Positions 3,440 through 28,388 of a DNA stretch of 64,000 nucleotides are shown piece after piece. The translations under genes and the position numbers were made by a program. The stretch is from Histomonas meleagridis 2922-C6/04-290x. Taxonomy: Eukaryota; Protista; Parabasalia. Each line of letters starts with the position of its first letter. The first letter of the stretch is position 1. Where the stretch lies: assembly GCA_020184695.1 (NCBI GenBank), contig JAANOX010000205.1, forward strand, positions 558,001-622,000. The letters run 5' to 3'. Below the pieces are notes generated by a model, which searched no databases, was not told the origin of the DNA, and saw only the letters and a program-made list of their open reading frames with translations.

Positions 3440-5599
3440 ATGAAGAGAAATGCGCCAAATATTTCGATCGATTTTTTTGTCACAAAACCTCCAAAACAAA
3501 TGCCTACAATCGAAGAAATAAATCGCGAAACTAAACAAGGTCTTGTTATTGTGAAATCTCATGTGAATCAAAATACCAAGCATATTACAATTCCTTCAAG
3601 CAACTTAGACATTGCCACAATTAATGAGATGGCTTCCAGCATATGGTCTGAGTTATCACAAGGAATTGATTCTCTTTTTGAAAATGGAATATCATCTATT
3701 AATTGTGCAAAGCTATATCAAGAAGCTGAACGTTACTGTCGCATTCAAAATCCTAAATCACTTTATGATCTTTTAATTCCTCAATTACAAGAAATTGTAA
3801 ATAACTTTATTACAACCATAAGCAGTGACTTGGATCTAAATGGAATTTCAAATTTAATACAAATTTTTGAGCAGAAAATGAATTATCTTCGCCGAATATT
3901 TAGTTATCTTGATCGTGGATATATTTATGCAAAACGTGTTGAAGGCAATTTATCTCTTAATGACTTAATTTATAGTATCCTCAGACATAGCCTCCAAGAA
4001 AACAAGGAATGTATTGATCATATTTTAACACAAATTCAACTTGAGATTAATATATTTCGATGTGAGGAAAATACATCAAAAACTTTCATCAAAACAGCAA
4101 TTGACTTCTTTGATCACTTAGGTTTTTATGATGAACTTATAGAGCCTATGATCTGTGATCAATCCAAAGATTATTATTCGTCAATTAGTCAAGAACTTAC
4201 ACTTTTACCGTTCATCGAATGGTTAAATCATTCGCTTACCAAAGAAAAAGAACTCATTGATGTTGGCGTCAAACAAAGTACTTATAAATTGGTGATGATG
4301 ATTATTCGTCAAACATGTTTAGAATCTAATGTTTCGTTAATATTTGGAAATGAATTCTGTGAAAACTTAGAAGCACAAAATGGTAATGTCATACAAAACA
4401 TATATCAATTCTTCGATGATGATTCAATTCGACATTTATTCCATGAAAACCTCGCAAATTATTACGTACAGTATTCAAAGAAACTTCTTGAAACAGATGA
4501 CATAACAGAAATTATTAGGGGATATTACCATTCATACAAATTTATTAATGAAATATTCCCTGGTAATGATATTATCTCTAAAATATTAACTAAATCATTT
4601 AGCCAAAGCTTTTTGCCGAAGTCAGATCATTTAGCAAAACTTTTTGCTATTCATATGGATAAATGTCAACCAATAACTAAATCTGATAGAGAGTTCCTAA
4701 AACTAAGTAGATCTAAAAGTACTTTCGAATCTGCTTATTCATATTTGCTGATAAAAAGAATATTTTCTTGGATCCCATTTAACATTGATCGTGAAAAAAA
4801 GTTGGTGAAAGTGTTCAAGAAAATCGCAGGACCTGATTACACGAATCGACTTGAAATGATTTTAAAGGATTTGGTCATATCCAAAGAAGTGAATTTTGAT
4901 GGAGAAAATTTTCAAGCGGTTATTTTATCGTCTGAAGTTTTTCCGAACACATCATTTGACAAGGTGAACTTCCCCGATTTTGTGAGAAACGATATGGAAA
5001 AATTTTCTGAAATTTATTTCCAAAATCAGAAAAATCAAAGGAAGGTGATCAATTGGTCCTCAAAACTTTCAATGGTTTTTGGTCAAATATGCGGGGTGCC
5101 CTGCAAAATGAATGGCAATCAGGCGGTTATTCTGCTGTCGGCACAAAACGGAGGAAAAACACTTAGCGAATTAGCGCATGAAACTGGAATTAGTGAAGAT
5201 GAGCTCAGGGATGAATTGGCTTTACTAATGTCAAAGGAGTCATGCTTCCTCATTGTTCAAGATGAAAATAATTATTATCAAATGAATGATAACCCACAAA
5301 TCATTACTAACAAAGATGGTGTGCTTGAGTTACCTGAACTAAATGCTTCAAAGATAGAAAAGGAAAGAGCTTCATTAGAATCAAACATTGAATACATTCA
5401 AAATAATCAAATGCTTTGCGAAATTATCACAAAGCTAAAAGTGTTCAAGGTCTTGCCGTTAAGTGATTTATACAACAAAGTTCTTAAAGTTTTGAGTTTT
5501 GAACCTGGAACCGTAAAATTTTTAAACTGTATTAAAGATCTTGAGAAGAAAGGATTCATCGAAAGGTGTGGAGAGAAACAGTACAAATATTTGCCGTGA
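3440..5599 (+). CDS. Divergent cullin-family protein (Cul4-like N-terminus)
   Basis: Cullin repeat motifs (YLRRIFSYLDRGYI, LAKLFAIHMDK, FESAYSYLLIKRI, GPDYTNRLEMILKDL, INWSSKLS) and C-terminal winged helix (IITKLKVFK...IKDLEKKGFIER). First ATG at 3440. Confidence 0.85.
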   Translation: MKRNAPNISIDFFVTKPPKQMPTIEEINRETKQGLVIVKSHVNQNTKHITIPSSNLDIATINEMASSIWSELSQGIDSLFENGISSINCAKLYQEAERYCRIQNPKSLYDLLIPQLQEIVNNFITTISSDLDLNGISNLIQIFEQKMNYLRRIFSYLDRGYIYAKRVEGNLSLNDLIYSILRHSLQENKECIDHILTQIQLEINIFRCEENTSKTFIKTAIDFFDHLGFYDELIEPMICDQSKDYYSSISQELTLLPFIEWLNHSLTKEKELIDVGVKQSTYKLVMMIIRQTCLESNVSLIFGNEFCENLEAQNGNVIQNIYQFFDDDSIRHLFHENLANYYVQYSKKLLETDDITEIIRGYYHSYKFINEIFPGNDIISKILTKSFSQSFLPKSDHLAKLFAIHMDKCQPITKSDREFLKLSRSKSTFESAYSYLLIKRIFSWIPFNIDREKKLVKVFKKIAGPDYTNRLEMILKDLVISKEVNFDGENFQAVILSSEVFPNTSFDKVNFPDFVRNDMEKFSEIYFQNQKNQRKVINWSSKLSMVFGQICGVPCKMNGNQAVILLSAQNGGKTLSELAHETGISEDELRDELALLMSKESCFLIVQDENNYYQMNDNPQIITNKDGVLELPELNASKIEKERASLESNIEYIQNNQMLCEIITKLKVFKVLPLSDLYNKVLKVLSFEPGTVKFLNCIKDLEKKGFIERCGEKQYKYLP

Positions 5600-5738
5600 G
5601 ATTAGTGCTTCCAACAAAATGACTATGTAAATAAAACAGATAAATATTTTTAGCATTAATATCAATTCCTTCTTGTTCAAGAAGTAATTTAACTATTTCT
5701 GTATGACCTTTTTCAGATGCATAAATAAGTGCTGTTTT

Positions 5739-5835
5739 AAATAATTAAAATAATTTCCAAATATTATTTTGAATTACCAAATAATACTTTGAAGTTCTAA
5801 ATTATTAAAATGATTATCAAATAAAACAAATATAT
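5739..5835 (-). other. 97-nt intron-like insert (17 + 4x20)
   Basis: ATATATTTGTTTTATTT + GATAATCATTTTAATAATTT + AGAACTTCAAAGTATTATTT + GGTAATTCAAAATAATATTT + GGAAATTATTTTAATTATTT. Confidence 0.75.
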
Positions 5836-5928
5836 GCCTTTGATATTAATATCAATTCCCTTTTGTTCAAGAAGTAATTTAACTATTTCTGTATGACCAT
5901 TTCCATATGCCAAAATAAGTGCTGTTTT

Positions 5929-6005
5929 AAATAATTTAAATAATTTCCAAATATTATTTTGAAATATTAAAATATTAATATAAATATTAAATAAAATAAA
6001 TCTGT
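5929..6005 (-). other. 77-nt intron-like insert (17 + 3x20) with degenerate head
   Basis: ACAGATTTATTTTATTT + AATATTTATATTAATATTTT + AATATTTCAAAATAATATTT + GGAAATTATTTAAATTATTT, then AAA ACA GCA CTT. Confidence 0.65.
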
Positions 6006-6318
6006 ACATTTGAAGATACTTCCATTAGTACTGTTTTAAATTATATTGATAACTCTTTTTAATTGCATTAAAAAATGTATTATAAAATAATTTTAAAAAA
6101 TTCCAAATAATATTTTTTTATTTTTTAATATTCGAACAAACACTCAATAAAGTATAAAATCACTTTAATTATTAAAATCAAGAACATTTTCTTTAAGTAA
6201 GTAGTCAAATAGTTATTTATTTACAAAAGTTATTGAAATTTATGAAACTGGACACCTCACAAGAAAATATTGTTTCTCTTGATTTCACAATAAAATTTTC
6301 TTTCTATAGATTTATAGT

Positions 6319-6862
6319 ATGGATCTGATTGGCATTCCTATGTGTGCACGGGTTCTAACTATTGTGGCATTCACTATATGCTTCACACCTTTGATGTTCT
6401 TGTTAATTCACATTATCTTGACTTCCAAATTTTTTAATACAATTATTCATTGTAAATGTCCTGATTCAAATAGGTGGCTTACATGCCCGTGCTGTGAAGG
6501 AAATTGTGTTGATCAGTGTTGGTTATGTAATGGCTGGAAATATTGCACTTGTTTTCCAAAATGCTGTTACGCTTCCTAAGATTACCTTTATTGTGGGTAG
6601 CCATCATGTTGCTGTCAGACAGCATACTTTAGGTGTCCGAGCGAGGAATATTGTTGTTGCCCTGATCCAACAGAAAATTCCATTGAAAGAGCTCGCATGT
6701 CACCTCAACAGGAGACAACTGGTGAATCAGCTGTAACTATTCCAACAGATCAAAACTAATAATAACCCTTATTTCAATGAGGAACAAACATATGCTCAAG
6801 GAGCACAATGTTGCCCATATGCCAACAATGAAATGATCGAGGATAACGTAGTCGTTAATTAA
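6319..6862 (+). pseudogene. Membrane-anchored cysteine-rich protein, disrupted
   Basis: Hydrophobic N-terminus followed by a Cys-rich frame that continues past TAA (6577) and TAG (6598): CCYAS*DYLYCG*PSCCCQTAYFRCPSEEYCCCP. Frameshift near 6755 into TNNNPYFNEEQTYAQGAQCCPY...VVVN*. Confidence 0.65.
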
Positions 6863-7175
6863 CAAAAGAGAAAAATAAATTATTCATGACACATCATAAT
6901 ATTACTATTTGTTAAGATGAAGTTTGATTCATTTACTGTCTTCTACTTAAATCTTGGATGAAACTCCTAATATGGTTTTTAACTTTGGAGCTCTTCGATA
7001 TATAATATACATGCATGATTAATGTTATATTTTAATATAATTGTTGAGTAATATTCATAATAAATAAAGGTAAATTTATTTTTTCATTTCGAAAATTGAA
7101 ACCGTTAACTGGATGTGATGTGACTTGACACTTTTCCTCGACCAAGATTTATTTGAATCGTTTACAAAATCATCG

Positions 7176-25400: not shown

Positions 25401-25797
25401 CGCTTTAATTAAAAAAAAAAAAAATGCCACGAATATTCTGTTATAACAAAGAAAATAAAGTACTGAATTTCAATTTTTTTTTTTTTGTTTCTGAAGCTTC
25501 CACAAAAAATAAACAATATTGCCGGAGCTAACAAATGTCATTTATCGAAAAAGTTTTTGTTCATTACAATAATGGTGAGAAATTGAAATAGGAATGCAAT
25601 TACTACAGGGATAGAACAGTAAAAATTTATTATTTTTGGCTTTATACCAGTGTTAGAATGCTTATATTAGAACGTGTAACATGTATAATATATATTCGAT
25701 CTACGTTTTTAAATGTTATTCTTCAATTTATTTATCAAAAAAACATGAATAAATGAATTTTTTAATTCAATTTTAGATGAAATTAGTTCTGATGGTA

Positions 25798-26090
25798 TTA
25801 TTTCTGAAGTAATTCAACAATTTCAGTGTAATTTTTTAAGGATGCTTTCATTAGTGCCGTTTAAAGTAGTTAAAATAATTTCCAAATATATTGGTGTTTC
25901 AAATTATTAATTTAGATTCCAAACAAAACGAATAAATATCTATGACATTAATATCAATTCCTTTTTTTCCAATTAAGTTCAATGTTTCTTGATACAGATC
26001 CATAAGCCATAAATATTTTTTAGGATTTTATTTTTCATAAAAAAAAGTTTCACGAGAAATATATTTCCATTTCTTGCTGTTTCATTAATA
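25798..26090 (-). pseudogene. Degraded 3' end of a DUF3447-ankyrin gene
   Basis: INETARNGNIFLVKLFF..KKGIDINVID parallels the 325-1155 C-terminus (INKSARNGNLFLLKYF..KGIDVNTKT); then an insert and *TALMKASLKNYTEIVELLQK*. Confidence 0.75.
25901..25937 (-). other. 37-nt intron-like insert (17 + 20)
   Basis: ATTTATTCGTTTTGTTT + GGAATCTAAATTAATAATTT between I-D and GAA ACA CCA (E-T-P). Confidence 0.7.
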
Positions 26091-26621
26091 AAAACTTGAA
26101 ATAAATAACCTAGAAATCCTGAAAAAAGTGAAAACGGTGAAGAAGATATTCATAGAAAAAAAGCTTCGATGTTTGAAATTTTTTCACATTCTAATATACA
26201 CAGAAAAACTCGAACTTAAAATTCATCATGACCGGAATAAGCAGGGGGACCAATGGGCGATTCTGTGGTGATATTACTTGATGTACATCAGGGTAGCCTG
26301 TTTTCCATTGAGATTTGAACGTTTTTCTCCACCATTACACCACTTACACTTTTAGAATTACTGCCTTTTCATAATGCATTATTATATGATACACTTTTTC
26401 GTCATAAGTGCACTTTTTGAAATTGAATAGTTTATGATTAATCCACAAATTACATCATTTGTTTCATCATTTTTTCCTATCACAAACCCCAAAATCTCTG
26501 CGGAAATACCAATTTCAAGTCCAAATTCCAAGGCATCATTTTAAGAAAAATTAAACATGTTAACCCCAAATTAATGAAAATCATTGAAAACTTTTTTAAA
26601 ATACTAAACCAATATCAGGGT

Positions 26622-27527
26622 TTAGAAGATTGTACAGGCCTTGTTGTAATAGGCTCTGCGTGATTCAAGTCCATTGTAGCCACCGTTAACTCTAAGAGTA
26701 ACTTGTTCAACTGTAGCACCATTAGCGCATAAGCTGTTCATTCCATTGTTGTACCACCAGAATCCAGCTGATGTCCATGGGTAATATACAGCTACGTAAT
26801 CAACACCTTGCATGACATTCTGATCACCGATATAGTTAGCGAACGCTTGATAGTTATATCTACCAGTGAGTTGGATGTAACCACCGCCCTTGTACTTAGG
26901 TCCATCACCAGCGTAGATGTTACCAAGATCTGAGCGATATTCATAAGCTGTACCACTTGCAAGTTCCTTAGTATACTTACCAAGAGCTGATTCGTGTGCG
27001 CATTGTGAAAGGAAGTGAAGGAGTGAGTTACGGTTTGTGATTCCGAATCTTGAGAGACAGTTATTAAGATCATTGATGATTGAGCTTGATGTATCAACCC
27101 ATCCGAATGCTTGCATTTGTGCTGTTGTGACTGTTCCTGTTGTTGTTGTTGGGGTTGGAACTGGTGTTGAGCCACCACTGGATGATGATGGGATCTTAAG
27201 AACTTGACCAACATAAATTAAGTTTGCATTGCTGATACCATTGAGTGAGCAAATAGCGGAAACTGTGGTACCATATTTTGATGCAATTGCGGAAAGTGTA
27301 TCACCTGATTTAACTGTGTATGTTGTGTATGAGGATGAGCTACCACCATCATCAGAAACTTTAAGAACTTGACCAACATAGATTAAGTTGGCGTTTGTGA
27401 TTCCATTCCATGCTTGAAGTTGTGCAACTGTTGTGCCATATTTTACGGCAATTGCTGAAAGAGTATCGCCGGATTGCACTGTGTAGTACGTCGCTGAAGA
27501 AGCAAGCGCTACCAAAAAGGCAAACAT
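26622..27527 (-). CDS. Secreted LysM-LysM-GH19 (chitinase/lysozyme, endolysin-type) protein
   Basis: Short signal peptide [12 protein letters not shown], two LysM domains ([20 protein letters not shown]...[17 protein letters not shown]/I), PT/T linker, GH19 core [49 protein letters not shown] at 27527. Confidence 0.93.
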
Positions 27528-28388
27528 AATAATGCTTCGATAACGCTTTTCACAATTCCCGGAAACCGAAGCTTTCAATTTTTAATGGGGGGTAATTGTG
27601 ATGAATTCATTTTGTTTGTTTTTTAAATAAATATATTTTCGAACACATGAATATTTATTAAATTATATTTATATAAAATAAAAAAGATATTATAATAACA
27701 ATATATATAAATTAGATTTATAATTGCTATTAAGGATTTGGAGATTTGTTCATTTGGTTTTGATGTGTCATTTGCCACAACGATTGTGTGGTATAAAGCT
27801 ATGAAATTTCCGCATCATTCTCTCAAAAAAAATTTTAGCTTCAGAAACCCAATACAATTTTTTGTGAGATTTCAAAATTCACTTTTTGATATCATGATAG
27901 GCCGATTATTTAACACGAAAAAGAGTTTATCCTTTTTAAAAAGTCGATCCGATGATTCATTTTTATCCTTCCATACAGTTGTCCAAACCCAATATCGTAC
28001 AGATGTAACCAAAGCCATAGTATCTCTAATGTTTTTGGAGTCTGTATTACGAGGAAATATTAGATATGTAGGTTTTATTAAATCATCCGAAAAAAAAAAA
28101 AAAAAAACAAAGTCTTTTAATTTCCCATTATATAAAACTATAATTGAATCATTTTTAAATATATGTATAATAGCAAAACACAAATTGCAAATTTTTATCA
28201 ATTTTGATAATTATCAAGAAACATAATATCGTTGAACTCTAAAAAAAGACGACGTAATTAATTAAGTCCTTAATTCACGACTAATCCCAAACCTTTTTAT
28301 TAATATTTTTCCTCCAAAAAATGATTTGTAACAAATTTCGTTTACTATTTCCGCTTCAAATAAGTCACAAAACATTAACATTTATTAA

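Follow-up and report, generated by a model that had tools for sequence, protein, structure and literature searches.

A gene that looks like a secreted bacterial or phage endolysin, found among the genes of a protist, raises the question of whether it belongs to that organism and, if so, what its product may be used for. The gene lies in a stretch of 64,000 nucleotides (C205:558001-622000 of the Histomonas meleagridis assembly, 43.1 Mb in 281 contigs), the whole of which we call the window. Our results make it likely that this is a functional Histomonas gene for a secreted, LysM-anchored GH19 muramidase directed against bacterial walls, which stems from an old bacterial transfer and was duplicated in the Histomonas lineage. 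This view builds on the architecture, catalytic residues, purifying selection, codon usage, context and family relations observed for the gene and on the fold of an AlphaFold2 (AF2) model, and from these we infer how the protein is likely to be secreted, what its substrate may be and which biological role it might play.

The bacterial origin of the family, its secretion, and the muramidase activity of its Trichomonas relatives have already been published, and the window adds only a third intact paralogue. Trichomonas GH19 enzymes were reported to be laterally acquired from bacteria in a study whose tree includes the Histomonas GH19s and which describes homologues in Histomonas, Tritrichomonas, Hexamita, Monocercomonoides and Blattamonas, often with LysM in place of SH3b (Hart et al. 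2025, PMC12612818). In a preprint from 2026 (10.64898/2026.10.12.758501), GH19 muramidases appear among the candidates for lateral gene transfer in each of the five trichomonad genomes annotated there, including that of Histomonas. In H. meleagridis itself, KAH0804812 was reported to combine LysM with a GH19 domain and to be more abundant in the virulent strain, and both it and KAH0804813 were described as secreted or surface proteins, with a signal peptide called by SignalP and with detection in the surface fraction as well as in the exoproteome (De Jesus Ramires et al. 2022, PMC9610433).

The coding sequence is complete and intronless and occupies exactly positions 26622 to 27527 of the window on the minus strand, running uninterrupted from its first ATG at 27527 to a TAA stop and predicting a protein of 301 amino acids with a mass of 32.2 kDa and a pI of 8.1. 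A TTG start for a longer reading frame was rejected as an artefact of the bacterial start-codon table. At the N terminus stands a short hydrophobic leader (residues 1-12, positions 27492-27527), a putative signal peptide, followed by two LysM domains at residues ~13-57 (27357-27491) and ~68-113 (27189-27326), a flexible linker rich in Ser, Thr and Pro (residues 114-131, 27135-27188) and an endolysin-type, or "loopless", GH19 catalytic domain (residues 132-301, 26625-27134). Leader and linker were read from the sequence and have AF2 pLDDT values below 50 for residues 1-9 and 117-129, respectively. Both LysM stretches were found in a Pfam search of the 301-aa protein (PF01476, E 1.6e-40); DSSP on the AF2 model gives E-H-H-E twice, corresponding to the beta-alpha-alpha-beta LysM fold, and Foldseek matched the model to the tandem LysM structure 4uz2 at 46% identity. 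The stop codon reads TAAA with the next base, as it does in 4/4 intact paralogues, and TAAA is the trichomonad poly(A) signal. The 3' end appears to be short (26605-26624, minus strand), as the contig of a small run from 2013 stops 17 nt past the stop.

The catalytic domain belongs to the endolysin-type (ELYS) branch of GH19, is nearer to endolysins than to chitinases and, with 170 amino acids, is without the plant loops. It matches the phage endolysins of PHROG 181 with E 1.4e-32 (PHROG endolysin families overall, E 1e-17 to 1e-32), and a phmmer search of the PDB returned PWe2 9ms7 (E 3.6e-24), mycobacteriophage LysA 9hqw (E 4.8e-20) and SPN1S 4ok7, whereas plant and bacterial chitinase chains were remote matches only (E 7e-4 to 0.5). 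The AF2 model, built on 46 homologues, has a mean pLDDT of 85, with values of 90-97 in the catalytic domain, and its top Foldseek neighbours are phage GH19 endolysins and tandem LysM structures (9ms7, E 5e-10, TM 0.74 on target). The phage GH19 endolysins (9ms7, 9hqw, 4ok7 and 9eoi of P. aeruginosa) have the compact fold without plant chitinase loops and the Glu-x8-Glu pair in common with the window protein, but they are only 20-31% identical to it and act from inside the cell at phage lysis, without a eukaryotic secretion leader. The chitinase-centred Pfam model PF00182 scores 15.3 bits on the domain, below its gathering cut-off of 25.5, and NCBIfam gave no match to the catalytic domain. The sub-threshold score seems to be a limit of the Pfam model and not evidence against GH19 membership, because PF00182 was assigned to only ~9 of the ~190 homologues returned and thus seems to miss the endolysin branch. 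Glu179 (codon at 26991-26993), the predicted general acid in an HES motif, is invariant in 172/172 homologous domains and aligns with the catalytic region of solved endolysins, and Glu188 (26964-26966), which lies nine residues further on and is predicted from homologue conservation to be the general base, is Glu in 171/172. The motifs that a sequence-only reading of this DNA had picked out are all present (H178-E179-S180, E188 nine residues on, a stretch of the GDGxxYKGxGxIQLTGRxNY type, and NGGYNG), and the PHROG, PDB and Foldseek matches support its view of a bacterial or phage endolysin-type enzyme and, together with Pfam and the AF2 model, its LysM-LysM-GH19 architecture.

A census of the family, made by six-frame search of the whole assembly and subsequent ORF reading, Pfam searches and alignment, turned up LysM-GH19 genes in three intact copies, a single SH3b-GH19 gene and a group of copies that are catalytically dead; the gene in the window is the third intact LysM-LysM-GH19 paralogue of Histomonas. 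The other two, KAH0804812 (C14a, 302 aa) and KAH0804813 (308 aa), form a tandem pair on contig C14 and share with the window gene, which lies on C205, the leader-LysM-LysM-linker-GH19 layout and nearly identical N-termini. Compared with it, they are 82% and 76% identical over the whole protein, rising to 88% and 82% for the GH19 domain alone, and they differ from it in pI (9.2 and 9.8 versus 8.1) and in the fraction of C-ending codons (0.73 and 0.66 versus 0.55). The idea that the window protein is the published KAH0804812 was rejected, since the latter is the C14a paralogue, though the predicted mass is 32.2 kDa in both. Between the window gene and C14a, dS is ~0.96 and dN/dS is 0.16 over the whole protein, and we therefore regard the duplication as old and both copies as kept under purifying selection. 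The SH3b gene (C258:118047-119012, plus strand) encodes a leader-SH3b-SH3b-GH19 protein of 321 aa, KAH0802871, deposited as "CwlA precursor", with a GH19 domain 75% identical to that of the window protein and two PF08239 domains (E 2e-34) that align as a pair with those of T. vaginalis TVAG_021240 (E 2e-19). The cluster on contig C190 (216986-220440 and 239185-240177) consists of LysM-(Pro/Thr linker)-GH19-like copies with split ORFs, in which the acid Glu has changed to Lys (CAYKS for CAHES), a deletion has removed the segment of the second Glu, and NGG is no longer present; their codon usage is at background level, and they are probably decaying pseudogenes rather than lectins.

It had been claimed from the letters alone that the gene is rich in C-ending codons, unlike its neighbours, and this proved correct. 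Its two-fold pyrimidine codons end in C in 47 cases and in T in 39 (55% C), compared with 1159 and 3922, respectively, in the other ORFs of the window (Fisher p 3.5e-10), for which a share of 24% is typical. On a codon-adaptation score built from actin and enolase versus the window background, the gene reaches 0.07, the highest value among 28 window ORFs (median -0.75, next best -0.40), and, like actin and enolase, it shows an avoidance of four-fold codons ending in G. The high score and the avoidance of G therefore indicate that the bias is the host's own translational preference and not foreign composition. Although real and host-like, the bias is of intermediate strength, as the scores make clear: 0.6 for actin, 0.20 for C14a, 0.12 for C14b, 0.11 for the SH3b gene and -0.7 to -0.8 for the dead C190 copies. 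Codon adaptation among the family copies parallels the evidence for expression.

For expression, we compared the region with contigs of four of the five small public runs in which the stretch occurs, taking these runs, by a guess, to be RNA. The contigs of three 2023 runs cover the LysM-GH19 ORF, those of two of the three ending at 27644/27645 inside the upstream spacer, and coverage of positions 27680-27947, further upstream, is absent in all four runs compared. In the 2013 run (6.7 Mb), positions 26605-27474 are covered at a depth of ~4, and this run is probably cDNA, because a DNA run of 6.7 Mb could not give such depth on a 43-Mb genome. Very deep short pieces (depth 8,000-25,000) overlap the window gene with 1, 1, 3 and 1 mismatches, which are the exact counts for C14a at these places, whereas the contigs of the window copy itself have depths of 160-207, all of these being per-contig values that are unfit for ranking genes. 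This hints that C14a is the dominant transcript and that the window copy is less expressed. The high expression expected by the sequence-only reading holds for the C14 paralogues more than for the window copy, with its lower depth and intermediate bias. Among the entries listed in the tables that PMC9610433 gives for surfaceome, proteome and exoproteome, those named "LysM" are KAH0804812 and KAH0804813, with the SH3b protein KAH0802871 alongside, and protein evidence for the window copy was not found among these listed "LysM" entries. The adaptation score and the dN/dS of 0.16 point to a gene in use, and secretion of its product appears probable by analogy, as the leader is nearly identical to the N-termini of the paralogues that were reported to be SignalP-positive.

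The same contigs drew our attention to the sequences on either side of the gene. The contig ends at 27644/27645 lie ~118 nt upstream of the ATG, beside a TCAT that resembles the trichomonad initiator (27644-27650), and if this were a real 5' end, the leader would be of unusual length and contain two upstream ATGs. On the other side, the ORF-poor stretch between the Hsp70 gene and the LysM-GH19 gene (25431-26620) is covered by the same transcript-like contigs; at 25806-25966 these have several alternative joints, with skips of 59, 83, 88 and 116 nt ending at 25946, and inserted letters that differ and loose ends were seen there in three runs. The stretch, and especially its part at 25806-25966, looks like a repeated or variable element.

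After the Histomonas paralogues, the GH19 domain is most similar to those of Monocercomonoides (72% identity), T. vaginalis TVAG_021240 (69%, SH3b type), Tritrichomonas foetus (68%, LysM type) and Hexamita (67%, PG_binding_1 type), with metagenome proteins also ranking among the nearest, and its identity to the domains of Clostridia, Paenibacillus and Bacillaceae is 60-64%. When the entire window protein is compared, the LysM-GH19 proteins of Bacillaceae are 52-55% identical to it, with 96% of it covered, and the whole LysM-GH19 architecture therefore exists in bacteria. The Firmicutes wall hydrolases of Bacillaceae, Paenibacillus and Clostridium combine the same endolysin-type GH19 domain with LysM, PG_binding_1 or choline-binding modules, and in Bacillaceae the N-terminal LysM repeats are arranged as in the window protein. 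The Firmicutes genes often have 3-5 LysM repeats, however, where the window protein has two, and the Firmicutes set separates from the metamonads in both of our trees, with moderate support. In a quick tree of 172 GH19 domains, the named Parabasalia and Preaxostyla fall into one half, with many metagenome sequences, and all named bacteria and Hexamita into the other (84% SH-aLRT). In a careful tree of 76 domains, 18 named Firmicutes are separated from all other sequences (93/94), the metamonad half now also includes Hexamita and a Clostridium neonatale-type sequence, and most of the inner branching lacks resolution. The window gene, the C14 pair and one further near-identical sequence form one clade (100/99).

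The window gene accordingly groups with parabasalid and preaxostylan GH19s, and plant chitinases are remote (E ~1e-3); sequence comparison argues solidly that the nearest relatives outside Metamonada are bacterial, namely Firmicutes, and not eukaryotic chitinases. Because the family spans Parabasalia and Preaxostyla, we consider the transfer to be old and not recent, and the window copy to have arisen by duplication inside the Histomonas lineage. Attempts to name the bacterial donor or to count transfers were abandoned, as 170 columns leave the deep branches without resolution and Hexamita and the Clostridium neonatale-type sequence switch sides between trees.

Some of the metagenome sequences deserve mention in their own right. 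Of the contigs whose sequences fall into the metamonad half, three were inspected; all three are AT-rich, at 27-32% GC, one of them having ankyrin-rich neighbours and another ABC-transporter genes, which gives them a protist-like look but is no proof. Two human-gut metagenome contigs (ENA, ~26 kb, 31% GC) carry adjacent SH3b-SH3b-GH19 genes at 4905-5861 and 6001-6933, beside ABC transporters; the GH19 domain of this pair is 78% identical to that of the window protein, and the pair stands near the Histomonas SH3b gene in the trees. A parabasalid of the gut, close to Histomonas, is the probable source of these contigs; it might, at a guess, be Dientamoeba.

The unusual similarity of the GH19 domain to Firmicutes proteins, and the occurrence of the same LysM-GH19 architecture in Bacillaceae, could also mean that the gene is a bacterial contamination, sits on a chimeric contig or was very recently and independently transferred. 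However, eukaryotic genes flank it at less than 1 kb on both sides, and its neighbours within a few kb include Hsp70, a 2189-aa BEACH-domain protein, a BspA-type leucine-rich-repeat protein and a protein kinase. The identical protein is known from two contigs, of up to 3.08 Mb in length, four intact paralogues are spread over three contigs, and the closest database proteins carry the name Histomonas meleagridis. Moreover, the codon bias is of the host type, a Shine-Dalgarno-like context is absent, the stop reads TAAA like those of the paralogues, and the gene is nested in a Histomonas-specific clade at a dS of about 1. Because of the eukaryotic flanks and the identical protein on two contigs, contamination or a chimera is excluded for practical purposes, the paralogues on other contigs and the host codon usage having led us to the same rejection, and we regard this entire explanation, recent transfer included, as extremely improbable. 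The protist host assumed from the outset is confirmed by the Histomonas paralogues and the eukaryotic flanks.

As a secreted muramidase of Histomonas, the protein would be routed into the secretory pathway by its leader, its two LysM modules would bind a GlcNAc-containing glycan, most likely bacterial peptidoglycan, and its GH19 domain would cleave the MurNAc-GlcNAc backbone, with Glu179 as the acid and Glu188 as the base. Such an enzyme could aid a bacterivorous, bacteria-dependent parasite in lysing or digesting bacteria at its surface or in its surroundings, and would descend from a Firmicutes-like wall hydrolase that passed from a bacterium to a metamonad long ago and was then duplicated in the Histomonas lineage. 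The suggestion of the sequence-only reading that this is an antibacterial or nutritional effector agrees, by analogy, with the published biochemistry of Trichomonas homologues, as two class B SH3b-GH19 enzymes of Trichomonas are muramidases that are inactive on three chitin substrates, an E-to-Q mutant being without activity (PMC12612818). These enzymes (TGA_001274700 and TVAGG3_0677660) share with the window protein their place in the laterally acquired GH19 lineage of metamonads, are secreted and have the bacterial wall as their target, and the catalytic domain of T. vaginalis TVAG_021240, 69% identical to that of the window protein, has the same two Glu residues. They bind via two SH3b domains and not via two LysM domains, and their muramidase activity is experimental, that of the window protein predicted.

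LysM binds chitin as well as peptidoglycan, GH19 includes chitinases, and class IV and bacterial chitinases are matched remotely in both sequence and structure, all of which would fit a chitinase instead of a muramidase. Such a chitinase would be directed against the walls of fungi in the caecum or against the eggshell, which is chitinous, of the nematode vector Heterakis, with LysM modules that bind chitin. Hart et al. (PMC12612818) left chitin activity open for GH19s without SH3b. We nevertheless consider a chitinase unlikely, as endolysins match the domain far better (E 1e-24 to 1e-32) than chitinases do (E ~1e-3), LysM and PG_binding_1 are the accessory modules that typify the endolysin subfamily in GH19ED (PMC8547705), and the class B enzymes of Trichomonas, at 69% identity, act on peptidoglycan and on 0/3 chitin substrates. 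It has also been proposed that KAH0804812, with its surface location and higher abundance in the virulent strain, takes part in extracellular-matrix binding and adhesion or aids in bacterial phagocytosis (PMC9610433), and the window protein might by the same token be mainly a lectin or adhesin that tethers bacteria for phagocytosis or binds host matrix, with catalysis being secondary. The genome does retain LysM-GH19 copies without both catalytic Glu residues, but the split ORFs and background codon usage of these copies look like decay and make them no model for the window gene, which retains both Glu residues and every substrate-cleft motif, all of them invariant, and for which dN/dS is low over the whole protein. 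A role chiefly in binding thus appears very unlikely to us.

The window gene might be sub-functionalised rather than a redundant third lysozyme, acting in another setting than the abundant C14 pair (the Heterakis vector, tissue) or on another glycan (chitin, differently modified peptidoglycan). This is a tentative and unlikely reading, which rests on the age of the copy (dS ~1), its lower pI and its apparently lower expression in culture.

To what was already published on this family, our analysis adds the genome-wide census and the finding that codon adaptation runs parallel to the evidence for expression. [quoted passage not shown] The parasite requires bacteria for growth, and secreted lysozyme-like enzymes would be plausible tools with which it may feed on the caecal flora or reshape it.
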